From: Trichoplax adhaerens
Taxonomy: Eukaryota > Animalia > Placozoa
Assembly (NCBI RefSeq): GCF_000150275.1
Contig: NW_002060947.1
Location: forward strand, 542,695-606,694
Direction: 5' to 3'
DNA: 64,000 nucleotides
Each line of letters opens with the position of its first letter. Position 1 is the stretch's first letter. The notes under the pieces were generated by a model. That model worked only from the letters and a program-made list of their open reading frames with translations, searched no databases and was not told the origin of the DNA. Below are positions 7,409 through 35,600 of this stretch, piece by piece. Position numbers and translations under genes: made by a program.

Positions 7409-8862
7409 CATTTTGTTACGGCGCCCATAGATATATAACTATTACTGAATTGTATTACTTTGTGCCGGAATCTGTCGTAACGATAGTAATTTAAAGTAAG
7501 TGGATGTTATTATACGACTGAAGGGCTTTTCGTATGATGCTTGCATCGATGAGTTATTGTGGATGATGCTTTCCTAACTTACCAACAATTTAGAGATGCG
7601 ATATTGAATACTTTACTAAGACGACTCTAGCAGCTACAGTAATTGGATCTATTTAATGGATTTTTACATGGAATAAACTTTTATTTTATTATCATTTATT
7701 AAATATATAATACTGTACGCCTACTTTCGATTGCCAAAAGCGCGGCTTGGTTCAGTCTAAAAGCCAATCTTGTACAGGTGTAACTCACTACAGTAAGATT
7801 GTTTATCGTTTCATATGTCATGAGCTGCCTATGAGACATAAAAAGGTGTCAATACATGTAGAATAGACTGTATTAACGATGGCTGTTACCTAGTGATTTA
7901 ATTATATTGCAGTAAGCTCTCCTTTGTGATGCTTATTTTACTCGTATAAAAAATATTTTACTGCAGCAGGCCTTGGAAGGCATAATAAGAAAGATAATAA
8001 ACGACAACCTTGGATTACTCCAAAGGTATCTCTTTAGAGGTTTAAGGCAAAATTTATGGCGAGAAACAGACCTCTACTATCCAAGTTCATCTGTTACGTA
8101 CCAACGTCGATTCCTTGCATCTTTCAATAATTTAATGAGTTTCATGTCCAAATTTTAGATGTAATTTATTTTACAAATCCTGCAACTAGACTGTTACTGG
8201 CAGTGTATCAAGTTTACACACTCATAAGAAATTAGCTCAACCCATCTTTATCAGCTACATTGGCTATTAGATTGCTACAACGATAGGCTGAAGCCATGTT
8301 TCAACTTACTGTGCCAATATTCTAATGGCCAGATGATCAGATATGATACCTGTAAAGTGTACATTTATTGTATGTCTAAATGCCCTGACAATTCGAAAAT
8401 CAATATACGAGTACGTAGTAAAATTCAAAATAGGATTTTAGCTAACATTGAATGAGCTCAACCGTTTGCAATCATGTTCAGTATCCATCGAATCGAGTTA
8501 CTAAACGAAGGAATCTCCAGTCCAATCGAATGTGGAAACTGGGGACTGCTAACCCTAGCACTTAATCTATTCAATTAAGGAAAGGAGTCGCTGGATGAAT
8601 TGCAGTAGCAGATTGTGTTTCGTCACCACTTCGCAACTTTACCACCCGGCACTACTCTTCTTTCGAGTAATCCCTGTTACCATTTAAGCTTTAACCGTGC
8701 TGTACGTGTACAGTACAGGTATTATTTTACCAACATTGACAGACAGATGGATCATCTTGAGCAACCAACAAGACTACTAAATTCTTCTCTCCATGCAAAA
8801 CGATGCTTACTCATCGATACCAAATTATAGACTACTAGTAATTTCGAGTAGTCCATCCGTCG

Positions 8863-8910
8863 AGAAAATAAGAATGAGTGTCCATGGCCAAATTCTCATT
8901 CTTATTTTCT
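8863..8910. repeat. Perfect 16-bp inverted repeat with a 16-nt loop
   Basis: AGAAAATAAGAATGAG (8863-8878) is the reverse complement of CTCATTCTTATTTTCT (8895-8910). Confidence 0.9.
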
Positions 8911-9706
8911 TCACTCCCTTTTAATAAAAGCGTTTTCATCTTCATTTTAAGAGGTGGGATAAAACCTAGTGGAGATCATTTTGGGGTGGGATGGGAGATT
9001 ATTGCGCATGACCATTAGCCGAAAAATGAAAGGCGGACTACTTAATTATTAGAAGAAAAGCTAGTCATGGACTACAGTACTGTGGTCGCATGGACTCGTA
9101 GAGGAAAGAAGAAGAACTCTATCGGGCATAGACTACTAGAAGAGGTATTTTCCAATTCATAGTCCTAGCCTGCTCTGCACTCAACTACTCATTAGTCACC
9201 TACGTCCTATAGTACTGTACAGTCCGTTATTTCTGAGTAGTTTCTGAATCGCGTTAAAACCAAGTGTTTCAACACTGGTTAAAACCGAACCGGCACGGCC
9301 AGCTTGTCTGTCATTCACCTTGTCAACCAACACTTTGACTGATTAATTAGCTTACTGCACTAGTATCTCTCTTATTTTCTTTTAATAGTCCAGGCTATAT
9401 CGAGCGCATTTTAGTCTAGCCTAGGTCTGATTGAAATCCTCTCTGGTGAATTAGAATACTAGTCGTAGAACTCCAATCTGGTCTTATACATTACCTTGAA
9501 TCGTGTCCATTTTGGATAGTAGTAATTGGAAACCGGTACGGAACAGTTCTACGACCTTCAAAAAGCAAGGTCGTATTTCCATGCGTATCTTAGTAACTGG
9601 ACTTTAAAGTCAAGCCTATCAATCCATGCGATATTGGATACTAGTCGATGCTGTTTTGCAACATTATTATTTAGAAATTCTAATTGATTGAAGTGAATCC
9701 ACTATC

Positions 9707-24824: not shown

Positions 24825-25290
24825 TACTGTACTGTATACTGTGTACAGTACTGTACTGTAAAGTATGATTTACTGTACATTTTACTGTACTGTATACTCA
24901 ATGTACAGTACAGTACTGTACTGTACTGTACAGTACTGTACTGGATCAACTAATGATCTGCATTACAGTACTGTACTGTACTGTACTGTACTGTATACCG
25001 CCGATTAACACTACTGTCCTGTAAACCAGTACCGTACAGTGTACACTGTACCGTGTAGCACACTCATTGTTTAATAACAGCAACGATGACGTCATTGATG
25101 TTGAACAATTGAAGACGGACCGTTAAAGCTGTCAAGTGAAAGGCTGTAGTCCGACGCGCTGTGCGGTACCGTACTGTACACGTGTACAAATATCGTGCTG
25201 TACTGTGCACTGTAGTCAACGCTAGTCAAGGAACTGTACACTGTACAGTAAGAGGTCTTCATGGTCCAGTCTGGTCTAGTACACTAAGTA
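24825..25290. promoter_or_regulatory. ACAGT/ACTGT pentamer array in the divergent SETD7/arfaptin promoter region
   Basis: Runs such as (ctgta)5 at about 24970-24995 and palindromic tacagtactgta. Lies between the starts of two head-to-head genes. CRE-like TGACGTCA at about 25087. Confidence 0.7.
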
Positions 25291-30312: not shown

Positions 30313-30585
30313 CTAATTAATAGGCGACGATCTCTTGCTAATATCACTAAGGCGATTTACAACAAAGTTGCTGGTATCAATAAAACGTTCGACACAGTTG
30401 ACGATACAAGACTCTGAGCGTGAGTCAAGCTTTGCAGCAGGTCGGTCGATGCATTTCTCCCAGCAGACATCGGTTAAATTATGGACTAAGGCTTGGAAAC
30501 GTGCTTTTTGAGTTTCCATTTCAATTATTCGTTGGAGTTGAGGATCGCCGACCTGGTTAGCACCAGCACTAGCAAAGTCTTCCAT
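30313..30585 (-). CDS. TIMM8: Mitochondrial intermembrane-space small Tim chaperone Tim8 (90 aa, intronless CDS)
   Basis: ATG at 30585. [30 protein letters not shown]...[15 protein letters not shown] with a twin CX3C motif. Confidence 0.95.
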
Positions 30586-30867
30586 GATTGGTAGCGTGCT
30601 TTTCCGATGGCAAATGTCCTTGAAGTGCTCGCTGATACTAACGCTCAAGTACAGTGTTGCACCATCCCAATCGAGTAGATGATGTTGCTCGCCACAGAGC
30701 CAGGTAAAGCTTTTCTATAACCTTGTCCGTGTCCTTGACAAGCCAGTATAATCACGGTGGCAATGCTACGGTATTAACCTAAGTTCAGGTCATCGTCCTA
30801 TGCAACGTCTAACCTCATGCTTCAACTATGGCCTTCACCCGTTCACGGTTGACTCGTTTTTTCAGAA

Positions 30868-32130
30868 CTGTACAGTATGTAATGTACAGTACTGTACTGT
30901 AGCATGGACCACTAGAAATACTGTAGTGTACACTGTACTGTACAGTACTGTACAGTGTACACCTGGAGTGGACACTCTCCTCAGATGGACGGACTTTTCG
31001 TAGCAGATGAGGCCCAAAATGTCGAAAAATAGTTATTCAGTATGGATCTTCCGTGTCTGTTCTCTAAATCACTCGTATTCATTTGAATAGCCTTGATGAT
31101 CTAAAGTTACTATTTCCAAGTAGAGCTTAGTCACAGGCAATGGAATACAATGTAATATTACTTAATTTAGAAAAAAAACCAGTCAATTCAGAATCGACTG
31201 TACTGTATTGCACACGAATTGCATAGTACTGTATACTAAAGTACTGTCTATCATAAGGAAGTGTTTGACACAATTTGTTGACCAAAATTGGCCAGGCATC
31301 TGTCCATCCAAAGGTGTTTTGAATGCGTATGCAGTCTTGAATCAAGCTATCTTCACAGTACTGTAGTCCTTGACTGTACTGTACACTGTACAGTACTGTA
31401 TTTATCCATACTAATACTGTACACTGTACAGTACAGTACCATACCATCGACTACTAGATACTGTACACTGTACAGTACTGTACTGTACACAGTGTACACT
31501 GTACAGTACACTGTGCAGTATGCAAACTACTGTAATTGCACAGTACAGTACAGTACTGTACTTACAGTACACTGTACTACAGTATACTAAAATACTAATG
31601 TACAGTACAGTACTGTCTATGATAAGGAAGTGTTTGACATAATTTGTTGACCCAAATTGGCCAGGCGTCTGTCCATCCAAAGGCGTCTTGAATCAAGCTA
31701 TCTTCACAGTAGTCCTTGACTGTACTGTACTGTACAGTACTGTACACTGTACACTGTACAGTACAGTACTGTACAGTACAGTACCATCGACTACTAGATA
31801 CTGTACTGTACAGTACAGTGTGTCAATTCAGAATCGACTGGACAGTTACAGTTACTCCTGTTCACGGTTATCATAACTTATAAGGAAGCGTTTGACACAA
31901 TTTGTTGACCGAAATTGGCCGGATGTCTGTCCGCCCAAAGGCGTCTTGAATCAAGCTATCTTCACAGTAGTCCTTGCCTGTACAGTACAGTATTTATCCA
32001 CACTAATACAGTACTGTACATAGTACAGTAGAGGATCTCATAAGGGTAATTACTGTAGCAGTCCATGACATGACCTGAGTGATTCAGTACTGAGTATACA
32101 GGTGTGTGGTGTCCAGTACAGTACAGTGCA
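30868..32130. repeat. Composite array: ACAGT pentamer tracts interleaved with three copies of a ~105-bp conserved core, in the divergent TIMM8/PHKA promoter region
   Basis: Core TAAGGAAGYGTTTGACAYAATTTGTTGACCNAAATTGGCC...CAAAGG...TTGAATCAAGCTATCTTCACAGTA...GTCCTTG at about 31254, 31623 and 31881. Sub-modules GTCAATTCAGAATCGACTG (31182, 31822), TACCATCGACTACTAGATACTGTAC (31442, 31782) and TATTTATCCAYACTAATAC (31399, 31991). Confidence 0.92.
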
Positions 32131-32674
32131 GTGGAGCAAATTAATTATTAATTAGTCACACAGTCCAGTAGCTGGCCGATCGATCAAGTCCAATCAGAAA
32201 GTTCTAAATCTGTGCATATTATTCATTGAATTGATATACCGATCGCTTAATCAGCCTTATAATTACTTCAATATATCAAGGACTACCGTTTTATTCTCTT
32301 CTAGTAGTCCTTCACTACATCCAATATTCTATCCTGGGTGTTGATTGACCCAAATTGGATCATTCCATTCCCTTGAAGTGGTAGACTGACGTGATCGGCT
32401 AGCGCGTAGCATAAATTGAATGAAGAAAGAAGCCCTTGCGAAAGGACAAACAACTTTGCATACTGATACATGAGCCTATGACGAGGCGGTTTATCCATGT
32501 TGGCTATCTAATCAAGGAGGATGGAGTTGTATCTATGATCAAGTCTATTTGGTTGAGTAATTAATTGACTACTATACCACTGAGAAAGCTTACATCGAAG
32601 CAATAAATAGACAGTAAGTGGTACTATCAAATAGCTGGTTTACAATTCAGTACGCAAAGAAAGATCAACGCAAG

Positions 32675-35600
32675 ATGGGAAGTAGGAAAGATCTCCATGG
32701 ACGACTGGATTACTATAATCAGTTGATACAGGCCACAATATTGACTCATCAGGTAATTTTAGATTATGGACACAACTATCTTGAATCAGATATAAAGTTG
32801 TATTGGTTGATGATGCATTATCATGTACGATAGTTTTATACGCGCTGTAAGTAGATGATAAGCCAGATGTCAAGCACGTAAATATCATTTCAGCATTCAG
32901 CAATTCATCAAATGATGTATTCGGTCATGAAGTTCCCATGAATTCACTTAGCATGTACACTTGCCAACTTGAATGTCCAGTGGGTTGCACTGATTTATGG
33001 CCTATGGGTATAATATCCCAATTCAATAATTTAATTGCCTACTTTATGCACAGTACACGTTTAGTCTATTTTTATTGACTTCCTCCTGACTGCAGAGGAA
33101 TTGGCTGGCATTGCATACAGGAAATCATAAAACATTCATAGATATTGTACAATTTCTACAGCATCTCTTTATTTGTATAAATAAGAATAACATGGTATTG
33201 ATTGCTCTAATGATGGTACTTATTCTTATCAAATGCTTGCCAATAGAATCCAGTAACGGGCCTAATTGCCCAAAGAGGCAATCATGCATGGGTTCGTGAT
33301 AACGTCTATGGTATTCTAGCAGTCTGGGGTTTAGCCTTAGCATACAGAAAATTTGCTGACACAGATGAACAACGTGCAATGTCGTATGAACTAGAGCAGG
33401 TAAGTGACACTTATAATCTTCATCAGTATATTTAAAAGAATTTACCATTGAAATTGTTATTTTTACATGTTTTTCTATTCTCAGAGAGTGGTCAAGTTAA
33501 TGCGCGGTACTCTGATGTGTATGATGAGACAGGTATTATAGCTAATTATTGCCTTTATACACTATTTCGTCTATAAAATTGTTACGTAGTTGTTACTGGA
33601 TACTTCCCATTAAATATACCATTGAAATATACGGTATAATGTATAGGTGAACGTATAGAATAAACGACTAGATGGTGAACGTATAGGCTGACCGGTGATT
33701 TTACACGATTACCGGTTTCTTACACTAACCGTAACATATATACTTTATATATATAAATACATGTTAATGCCTAGACTGTTGAGTATGTTGTTATTGTTTG
33801 TTCATTCTAACCATTTCAATTCTTATTTATAATATCAGACGGCATTTTTGTTCCCTTATTGGTATCATAGACACTTTAAATTAAAGCGAAATATTTGATT
33901 TGGTAATTACAGATCGACAAAGTAGAAAAGTTTAAGAAAACCCAATGTGTCGATGATGCACTTCACGCCAAGTATAATGCGGGTAATCTATGCATTCTAA
34001 TATTTTTTATGAAATACTCATGTTTTGCTTTCGATTTATGAAAACATTATGATGATTTAATATCTAAGCAGTAAATGTTATCCACTTTATACTTAATAAA
34101 CATGATGTGCAGAAAATGGTAGCGTAGCAGCTGGTGATAAAAAATGGGGCCATTTGCAAGTCGATGCTACATCATTGTTTGTTTTAATGCTGGCGCAAAT
34201 GACTGCATCAGGTATTAGTGCTATGCATAACATTGATATCTTAAAATGAAACCGAATTCATAACGTAGACAATAGTTTGCAGGTAGCTGTTTTTAATTGA
34301 ACAATTTATTGTTGAAAAATACCATTTAAAAAAGCATTTAATACATAAAAAAGTGGCTCTTCTGTTATAAAATAATGACATAAAACTTAATATTAGTTTA
34401 GCTAGCTTGGAAATTCTTCGTATGATGTAAATCTTGATTATCATCACAATATCCATTACGAATTTTAAATACTTGGCTATTATTCTAGGATTGAAAATTA
34501 TTTTCACGACTGATGAAGTAGACTTTGTACAGAATTTGGTCTTTTACATTGGTAGTGCTTATCGAATTCGTGTAAGTCTACTATAGGTGTTATGCCTTTT
34601 TATGCTGAATATCAATATTTGTCATCTTTTATAACATATTATGAAGAAATGATTGTAATACATACTTTTAGTCATGTTCTATAATACTTATAGCAGCCTT
34701 GCATTGGTATTTAAATAAATAGGATTATGGAATTTGGGAGAGAGGTGATAAAACCAATCATGGATTGCCCGAATTGAATGCAAGTTCAATCGGAATAGCA
34801 AAGGTATAAAATAGGAAAGTGATTATAGTCACTATCCCTTTAATTTATCACCGCTAGCAATGTATCAATCAGAATTTCACTTTGAAGTTACTCTGGATAC
34901 TGTTTATAGGCTGCATTAGAAGCCATTAGTTCGTTAGACTTGTTTGGATCTCATGGCGGCCCGGCATCAGTAATTCATGTTATGCCTGATCAAATCAAAC
35001 AGTGTGAGGTAAACCTGTCTTACTATAATATTGTACATAATGGTACAAATTAATGTCAAGCTCCTTTACTTCAGTATAATTCCAATTTAATCAAGTTGAT
35101 AAAGTTTCTACTGTGCATACACGTATACTATAATATTGCTTATCGATATAATCTATTAGGTGGTTCTACAATCTATGCTTCCTAGAGAATCGAGCTCTAA
35201 GGTACTGAAAGAGGGCTTTTTGATATATAGGCCTAATATATCAAAAATCACTCTAAATTTCTGGAGGATTTTTTGTTGATTCCCAAGAATTTATTAGGAA
35301 TTAACTACCACATTTGAGTGTGTAATAGATATGTACCCATTATATGATCGTATAGGAAATTGGTGCAGCAACTTTATCTGTTATAAGTTTCCCCGCATTT
35401 GCTATAGCTGACGATGAACTTGTTCGAATTACAAGAAACGAAATTATTACCAAATTACAGGTATTACTTTATATGCTAACAAGCGATGAGTATCGTCTCA
35501 GTAAATCGTTCACATAGAGCTCTGCATATGTATACTTTTTTGCTAAGTATACACAATAAATTAAAATACAGGGGCGATATGGGTGTCGGAGATTTTTAAG

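Follow-up and report, generated by a model that had tools for sequence, protein, structure and literature searches.

A tandem array between TIMM8-like and phosphorylase kinase genes of Trichoplax adhaerens: probably a decayed miniature inverted-repeat transposable element, amplified locally within an (ACAGT)n promoter microsatellite

The miniature inverted-repeat transposable element (MITE) Micron of rice reportedly targets a microsatellite. In the placozoan Trichoplax adhaerens, the dominant microsatellite is ACAGT, with 54% of tracts placed no more than 1 kb upstream of a gene (PMC2871265). The same 2010 survey described MITEs as rare, with one family of about 20 copies, and made no connection between the ACAGT tracts and transposons (PMC2871265). 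Placozoan promoter hubs are anchored at housekeeping promoters, and these often hold elements annotated as 'Mutator' by EDTA, with the anchor motif located in their inverted repeat; the elements are common to four species (Kim et al. 2025, Nature, PMC12221973). The insulation-associated motifs of T. adhaerens are a repeating ACGG, said to be part of a transposable element, and ACAGT (NAR 2026, PMC12817080, citing Kim et al.). Here, we analyse a 1.2-kb array of three related units and ACTGT/ACAGT pentamer tracts, located between a TIMM8-like gene and a phosphorylase kinase alpha/beta gene in a 64-kb stretch of T. adhaerens contig NW_002060947.1. This stretch is called the window, and all sequence coordinates are positions in it. 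An initial annotation, made from the letters of the window, had suggested that the array may be a repeated cis-regulatory cassette with slipping pentamers as spacers, a small structured RNA, or a non-autonomous element targeting ACAGT tracts.

The array is best read as a decayed MITE that was amplified locally and is embedded in the (ACAGT)n promoter microsatellite, with a probability that we put at roughly 85%. Its three conserved cores (31254-31372, 31623-31718, and 31881-31976), already reported in the initial annotation with start-to-start spacings of 369 and 258, are returned by the repeat finder as a three-copy family and can be aligned by MAFFT. Cores 2 and 3 are 92% identical, and core 1 is set apart mainly by an 18-bp and a 5-bp insertion, both absent from the other two. 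When core 2 is searched against the genome (105.6 Mb, 1414 contigs), 10 other loci match its first ~60-80 nt, and the core is, therefore, not unique to this locus. BLAST against these loci extends the homology around the core leftward to about 30961. A genome search with 30961-31320 yields 236 first-look candidates and 49 scored matches, with 72-84% identity and spread over many contigs. The family is a dispersed, non-coding MITE of ~375 bp, with at least about 100 copies.

The 375-bp consensus, derived from a MAFFT alignment of 30 copies with their flanks, has conserved and inverted termini; the outer 20 nt of its left end were entered by reading copies. The terminal inverted repeats (TIRs) start with CATGGACTACTAG, are complementary at 36/36 nt, and continue imperfectly to about 53 nt through a GGAYGGACRGAC block. 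This imperfect inner inverted block (left CTCGGATGGACGGAC, right GTCTGTCCGTCCAAAGG) is an ACGG-type repeat (GGATGGACGGAC / GTCTGTCCGTCC). The exact 13-nt left terminus CATGGACTACTAG is found at loci L021 and L028, which are overlapping stretches of one contig, and the exact terminal 16-mer occurs 47 times in the genome. Searches with short anchors give 96 genome matches, on many contigs, for the left 15-mer (≤1 mismatch; 0 for the reversed control), 335 for the exact 12-mer GGAYGGACRGAC (13 for the reversed control), and 1310 for the terminal 16-mer CATGGACTACTAGAAA (≤2 mismatches; about 100 for the reversed control). As CATGGACTACTAGAAA is far commoner than the 375-bp family explains, this terminus must be common to several families or to many solo ends. 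Family copies are only 68-83% identical to the consensus, and the family is, therefore, old. Near both ends of the consensus, at ~68-82 and ~316-326, the motif GGCCRAAATGTC adjoins the ACGG-type blocks; its two copies are direct rather than inverted, and it may be a subterminal binding site.

Insertion of the elements left a recognizable trace. Over 24 facing terminus pairs, flank identity at k = 7 is 0.55 versus 0.28 for shuffled pairings; for all remaining values of k between 2 and 11, it does not differ from the control. With no more than 1 mismatch allowed, five of the 24 pairs agree at k = 7, and not a single pair agrees at k = 6 or at k = 8-11. Perfect 7-bp target-site duplications (TSDs) are GTTTGGT, for a 375-bp copy, and CTGAGGA, ATTCAGG, and ACTACTA, for mini-elements of 40-50 bp. 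A 7-bp TSD combined with inverted repeats is the signature of a cut-and-paste DNA transposon, which makes the 375-bp family a MITE.

The length of this TSD lies outside the 2-, 3-, and 8-bp classes. Elements of the P superfamily have a 7-8-bp TSD, CA-initial inverted repeats, and a THAP9-like transposase. Mutator and Mutator-like elements (MULEs) typically have TSDs of 8-11 bp, and the 7 bp of the present family are at or below this usual range; we presume that the Mutator range of the EDTA TIR module, which is not stated in the EDTA paper, includes 7 bp. As far as can be judged from the sequence, the 7-bp TSD and the CATG start fit P-like or short-TSD Mutator-like elements.

Ultra-short palindromic elements (32-68 bp), comprising little beyond two CATGGACTACTAG termini, are found at L072:3977-4017, L073:3974-4019, L064:3981-4038, L070:3913-4018, and L067:1005-1049, and the same type occurs in the window at 32277-32313 and 8826-8857. 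Exact termini and perfect 7-bp TSDs are seen in several of them, and within the terminus class these elements seem to be the youngest or the best preserved. The 32-bp palindrome at 8826-8857 belongs to a group of six motifs that resemble the terminus, with 2-4 mismatches in 16, clustered at window positions 8676-9394. Terminal segments of the family are arranged in tandem at many other loci too (L043, L055, L057, L060, L061, C1009:2008-3118, C1241:613-988, and C1399:435161-435373), the periods of these other arrays being about 67 to 310 bp.

The second component of the array is the pentamer repeat, which is best notated (GTACW)n: because GTAC is palindromic, ACTGT and ACAGT are one repeat on opposite strands. 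The pattern (GTACW)4 has about 6,100 genome matches per strand, compared with 0 for the control. At 21 of 50 distinct 375-bp family loci, a perfect tract of at least three units is located inside the element or within 150 bp of it, and tract density is 1.04 per kb near the element versus 0.26 per kb beyond 600 bp. The association with pentamers is real, and it may be caused by invasion of the element by the repeat, by a shared promoter preference, or by targeting. One locus, L015, is a clean copy with a non-pentamer TSD, and its pentamers are inside the left inverted repeat, at the same site as in unit 1 of the array. The earlier suggestion of a non-autonomous element tied to ACAGT tracts thus stands as regards a dispersed element with TIRs and TSDs that is enriched beside the tracts; targeting of the tracts is one candidate cause among the three, and the TSD of L015 is non-pentamer. 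A general link between the terminus and pentamers was considered and rejected, as only 1 of 20 loci with the exact 16-mer has a tract within 150 bp, versus 21 of the 50 family loci. Pentamers also occur without the element: at 24843-25250, the window has another locus dense in (GTACW)n, and nothing there matches the MITE consensus.

Direct reading, the repeat finder, and consensus mapping together place the array at 30867-32067 (Table 1). The array described in the initial annotation (31180-32030) is, thus, real, but its extent was too small, as a full element lies on the left and a vestigial fourth 3' end on the right. Terminus motifs of the 5' type start at 30903, 31445, and 31785, and those of the 3' type are at 31718, 31976, and 32067; the unit termini are degraded, with 2-4 mismatches in 16. 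There is one ACGG-type block in each core, and another at the left end of unit 1. Open reading frames over the array are repeat-derived only.

Table 1. Features of the array and of the two genes that flank it (window coordinates).
Feature	Position	Strand	Remarks
TIMM8-like coding sequence, Tim10/DDP zinc finger	30316-30585	minus	directed away from array
(GTACW)n pentamer tract (ACTGT/ACAGT), left of element	30867-30902		starts 282 bp upstream of TIMM8-like ATG
Unit 1, full-length MITE copy	30903-31372	plus	MAFFT and consensus mapping
Unit 1, 5' terminus CATGGACCACTAGAAATA	30903-30920	plus	
Unit 1, pentamer tract within 5' inverted repeat	30921-30960		
Unit 1, body	30961-31319		matches consensus 20-345 at 83%
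Unit 1, 5' inner inverted-repeat block CTCAGATGGACGGAC	30980-30994	plus	ACGG-type repeat
Unit 1, 3' inverted repeat	ends at 31372		diverged; ends with GTAGTCCTTG
Unit 1, flanking 7-mers			ACTGTAG and ACTGTAC
Core 1	31254-31372	plus	unit 1 3' subterminal part and 3' inverted repeat
Core 1, ACGG-type block TCTGTCCATCCAAAGG	starts at 31299		
Spacer	31373-31444		pentamer tracts and module TATTTATCCATACTAATAC at 31399-31417
Unit 2	31445-31718	plus	5' terminus CATCGACTACTAGATA
Unit 2, degenerate pentamer tract	31461-31605		145 bp; replaces consensus 20-266
Core 2, within unit 2	31606-31718		matches consensus 267-375; ACGG-type block from 31668
Pentamer spacer	31719-31784		stretch most variable between H1 and H2
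Unit 3	31785-31976	plus	5' terminus same as unit 2, then 21-bp pentamer tract
Unit 3, internal piece	31822-31840		consensus 239-257
Core 3, within unit 3	31880-31976		consensus 279-375; ACGG-type block from 31926
Pentamers and second TATTTATCCAYACTAATAC copy	31977-32030		TATTTATCCAYACTAATAC at 31991-32009
Vestigial fourth 3' end	32031-32067	plus	TCATAAGG then CTGTAGCAGTCCATG, with canonical GTCCATG terminus
Separate palindromic mini-element	32277-32313		37 bp, two termini only; 362 bp upstream of phosphorylase kinase ATG
First coding exon, phosphorylase b kinase alpha/beta gene	32675-32752	plus	by-eye reading

Seen against the consensus, the smaller features listed in the initial annotation find their place in the element. 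The ACTGT/ACAGT tracts between the cores do differ in length, according to Tandem Repeats Finder and the repeat finder. The motifs TTGGCC, TTGAATCAA, and GTAGTCC are found in each of the three cores, and the three small modules each occur exactly twice in the 64-kb window: GTCAATTCAGAATCGACTG at 31182 and 31822, TACCATCGACTACTAGA at 31442 and 31782, and TATTTATCCAYACTAATAC at 31399 and 31991. The GTCAATTCAGAATCGACTG module is an internal element segment (consensus 239-257) and TACCATCGACTACTAGA is the left (5') terminus of the element; TATTTATCCAYACTAATAC lies outside the units, between them, and was duplicated along with them. The 5-bp insertion of core 1 (31358-31362) changes CAG-TA-GTCC to CAG-TA-CTG-TA-GTCC; it has the form TA + CTG + TA and is no direct duplication of the adjoining pentamer. 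Neither cores 2 and 3 nor core 1 of Trichoplax sp. H2 have it, which marks it as recently gained. The mini-element at 32277-32313 has the flanks AATATAT and ACTACAT, which match at 5/7 positions.

The gene context given in the initial annotation is borne out, with a Tim10/DDP-family coding sequence on one side and a phosphorylase kinase start on the other. The two genes are head-to-head, with the array between them, and TIMM8 is a housekeeping-type gene. The identity of the phosphorylase kinase alpha/beta gene comes from the Trichoplax sp. H2 annotation of the neighbour gene (PF00723 Glyco_hydro_15 and PF19292 KPBB_C); a Pfam search with the first exon alone gives no match.

The three units bear marks of a common local origin. 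No other genomic match reaches the last ~16-36 nt of the cores, and the right inverted repeat common to the three cores departs from the consensus at roughly one position in three. As this derived 3' end is shared by the three cores and unmatched elsewhere in the genome, the cores arose locally. Units 2 and 3 further have in common a derived CATCGAC...AGATA 5' terminus, and this derived left terminus, together with the derived right ends, points to one local copy as the source of the units. At consensus 19/20, the deletion end-points fall where the pentamer tract of unit 1 sits. A likely history begins with an element that would have inserted, in the Trichoplax lineage, into or beside a pre-existing pentamer tract upstream of TIMM8. 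Two or three duplications of the whole unit would have followed; the flanking and the invading pentamer tracts could have driven them through unequal exchange or slippage, or the unit could have re-inserted locally. Internal deletions ending in pentamer tracts would have left only termini and cores, and the spacing would still be changing through pentamer slippage.

One alternative dispenses with unequal exchange altogether, the extra units being derivatives of unit 1 that had lost internal sequence and re-inserted locally, each on its own, in the pentamer tract. It accords with the retention of both termini in every unit, with the flanking 7-mers of the three units, which match at 6/7, 5/7, and 5/7 positions, and with the clear mobility of very short deletion derivatives of the terminus class, which have perfect 7-bp TSDs. 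Nevertheless, matching flanks are weakly informative inside a pentamer tract, and a duplication would inherit them too. The degradation of the unit termini also speaks against recurrent insertion, as does the duplication of the TATTTATCCAYACTAATAC module outside the units, which suits segmental duplication. Re-insertion in place of unequal exchange is rather unlikely, with about one chance in four.

The locus can be compared with related genomes. The assembly of Trichoplax sp. H2 (GCA_003344405.1) encodes the exact TIMM8-like protein, and its locus aligns with the window end to end over 6.6 kb, at 98.25% identity and collinearly, with the three units and the vestige present. As the same array is found in this independent assembly, it is no assembly artefact, and it predates the H1/H2 split. 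Between H1 and H2, there are 21 differences over 30500-32760, 20 of which fall in 30933-31807. Fifteen are indels or changes in pentamer tracts, in agreement with the earlier view that the pentamers are the fast-changing part, and five are in MITE-derived sequence; only one is found in the roughly 1 kb outside the array. Substitutions outside repeats amount to about 0.1% between H1 and H2.

A word search with the TIMM8-like protein returned proteins that are 76-79% identical. The Logan contig L088, from a more distant placozoan, encodes a TIMM8 with 78% amino-acid identity and shares the downstream gene, which makes the locus orthologous. Degenerate pentamer tracts are present in the 633 bp upstream of TIMM8 there, but this stretch matches the MITE consensus nowhere and lacks an ACGG block. 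Two metagenomic contigs encoding a 79%-identical Tim8 agree with this over about 735 bp. The MITE of the window starts 318 bp upstream of TIMM8. Insertion of the MITE, thus, seems to be younger than the pentamer tract, though the element could lie further upstream in those species. In these more distant placozoan-like genomes (L088:1-633 and L089:1-739), degenerate ACTGT/ACAGT tracts lie 100-400 bp upstream of TIMM8, and the promoters are otherwise unalignable with the window: the tract is shared, not its sequence context. Outside the genome, a two-block pattern scan of metagenome contigs for the family gave 21 matches, none of which matches the MITE consensus. These matches (L091-L111) are stretches of ~300 bp without relation to the family, each lying between (GGAC)n/(GTCC)n microsatellites in inverted orientation. 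Seven that were inspected have about 40-47% guanine and cytosine and are perhaps invertebrate host DNA; L093, L094, and L095 have internal sequence in common.

A MITE origin is compatible with a later function, and a regulatory role of the array is plausible by analogy with the published promoter elements. The 375-bp family is, on balance, rather likely to be among the 'Mutator' elements of Kim et al., and going by the literature the array probably multiplies a motif used in promoter-hub or insulation architecture. A stronger version would make the array a domesticated architectural or cis-regulatory cassette, in which tandem copies were selected as ACGG-type binding sites, with the pentamers as spacing or as a second site. 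The copies would then strengthen a hub or insulation anchor for the head-to-head TIMM8 and phosphorylase kinase promoters. Four ACGG-type blocks and six terminus motifs in the 1.2-kb array, with a seventh terminus in the mini-element at 32277-32313, are consistent with such a cassette, as is the housekeeping type of TIMM8, since published work connects the TIR motif (repeating ACGG) and ACAGT, at housekeeping promoters, with insulation and loop anchors (PMC12221973, PMC12817080). In the copies found by the 5' anchor, an unbiased set, the 3' ACGG block is also somewhat better conserved than the interior (0.88 versus 0.73-0.80). In the larger, similarity-found set, however, the conservation of the blocks is barely above that of the interior, and the three cores have outer inverted repeats that have moved far from the consensus. 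The element is absent from the 633 bp upstream of TIMM8 in the distant placozoan, and H1 and H2 are too close to reveal constraint. Selection for such a cassette is rather unlikely. Strong selection on the ACGG blocks was rejected as an explanation, their per-position conservation being marginally above that of the interior.

A more specific and still less probable idea is that the tandem amplification of MITE ends within the ACAGT microsatellite tunes promoter architecture. Each unit would add an ACGG-type inverted-repeat site and a variable pentamer spacer, and exchange driven by the microsatellite would dial the strength or spacing of a hub or insulation anchor at a head-to-head housekeeping promoter. 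If this were true, the many other terminal-segment arrays of the family would be the same tuning process elsewhere.

Other classes of element fit the locus poorly. Rolling-circle elements (Helentron-associated, DINE-1/pearl-like) and elements of the short interspersed nuclear element (SINE) type are known to carry microsatellites and internal tandem repeats, and the bivalve pearl/CvA elements have an ACGG-type repeat near their ends, so that the microsatellite association, the tandem arrays of the family at several loci, and the ACGG-type repeat near its ends could suggest such an origin. However, the 36-bp inverted repeats reach the very ends of the consensus, the 7-bp TSD varies in sequence, and the consensus has no tRNA-like head, poly-A, or 3' hairpin-CTRR end. 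Helentron-associated elements, among which the bivalve pearl/CvA/DTC84-type elements are now classed, have no TSD and insert between T and T, with short subterminal inverted repeats and a 3' hairpin. A rolling-circle or SINE-type origin is, thus, very improbable.

Even less can be said for the core as a small structured RNA whose copies would form a family of non-coding RNA genes. The three local cores do allow a CAATTT...AAATTG hairpin, as the initial annotation had noted for its YAATTT-loop-AAATTG stem, but the AAATTG half is not conserved across the family. With CAATT fixed, the 3' half of the stem changes (ATTGG, TAAGG, GTAGG, GTTGG, and TCAGG) without compensation, and RNAalifold gives 0 consensus pairs over 29 family copies. 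Folding z-scores range from -0.40 to +0.68 over both strands, the cores folding no better than shuffles, and no tRNA was found by ARAGORN. The initial annotation did not recognise the core as a known RNA family, and no Rfam model reaches its threshold; at a permissive E-value, Rfam returns only microRNA-hairpin models, far sub-threshold (best match 36 bits, against a gathering score of 69), and these fall on pentamer palindromes instead of the cores. The conserved unit is, moreover, bounded by inverted repeats and a TSD, and a structured RNA is scarcely credible here. Repeat-rich Sanger-era scaffolds can mis-join microsatellite-flanked repeats, but the independent H2 assembly has the array as well, and an artefact of assembly, or a neutral duplication that only a single assembly has, is equally hard to sustain.

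The reading as a decayed, locally amplified MITE has to be set against several observations that weigh against it or against its extension to promoter architecture. In the 375-bp family, TSDs have mostly been eroded, and it is largely the mini-elements of 40-60 bp that give a clean signal. The flank matches of the three units suit inherited flanks and separate local insertions equally. Most other arrays of the family are without pentamer tracts, which implies that pentamer-mediated exchange is not the sole route to an array, and that array formation is a property of the family. An autonomous partner with matching ends was not found among the matches listed. The P-element domains PF12017 and PF21787 have no match in the genome, these models being also silent in all control genomes; PF10551 (MULE) gives four fragments, without a matching inverted repeat in the 1-3 kb of flank examined; and ten open reading frames adjoining exact termini are ordinary host genes or have no Pfam match. 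As regards function, ACGG-block conservation is 0.88-0.91, against 0.83-0.89 for the interior, in the similarity-found set. The published loop-anchor motif and TIR tree are figures, and the ACGG block is likened to the motif by text description only; the letters of the motif were not found in the text or supplements of Kim et al. 2025 (PMC12221973), where logos appear only in figures.

The analysis removes a false lead, as the core is a transposon end and not a unique regulatory cassette or an RNA gene. The kind of structure is already known, a decayed MITE amplified in the known ACAGT promoter microsatellite. The analysis also provides the anatomy, at sequence level, of a placozoan MITE family unreported in the 2010 survey, with its termini, 7-bp TSD, ACGG-type inner repeat, mini-derivatives, and tendency to form arrays. 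If the link to the elements of Kim et al. holds, the locus is a compact natural example that combines ACGG inverted-repeat sites and ACAGT tracts, and its variation between H1 and H2 would make it a convenient test case for placozoan three-dimensional promoter architecture.

Like Micron, which is said to reside preferentially in or beside one microsatellite, the placozoan family is enriched beside one particular repeat, although, here, a shared promoter preference could explain the association. Bivalve elements of the pearl/CvA/DTC84 type and Drosophila Tetris likewise are short non-autonomous elements with an attached microsatellite, whose terminal segments occur in local tandem arrays; unlike the bivalve elements, the placozoan family has classical inverted repeats and a 7-bp TSD. 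Compared with the Trichoplax (ACAGT)n microsatellite (Wang et al. 2010, PMC2871265), the spacers of the array are the same repeat and are likewise within 1 kb upstream of genes. In contrast to the 2010 survey (PMC2871265), the MITE family found here has roughly 100-250 copies and is both enriched beside the tracts and invaded by them. With regard to the 'Mutator' elements of Kim et al. (PMC12221973), local tandem amplification is not described there, and no MULE transposase was found with the ends of the present family, in the flanks of the four PF10551 fragments. The anchors of that study number thousands (PMC12221973), versus 335 exact GGAYGGACRGAC 12-mers here, so that the family would be at most one of several. 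The locus resembles these elements in being the remnant of a TIR DNA transposon in a housekeeping-type promoter region of T. adhaerens (PMC12221973), and, as in the published insulation motif (PMC12817080), the inverted repeat of the family holds an ACGG-type repeat (GGATGGACGGAC / GTCTGTCCGTCC).

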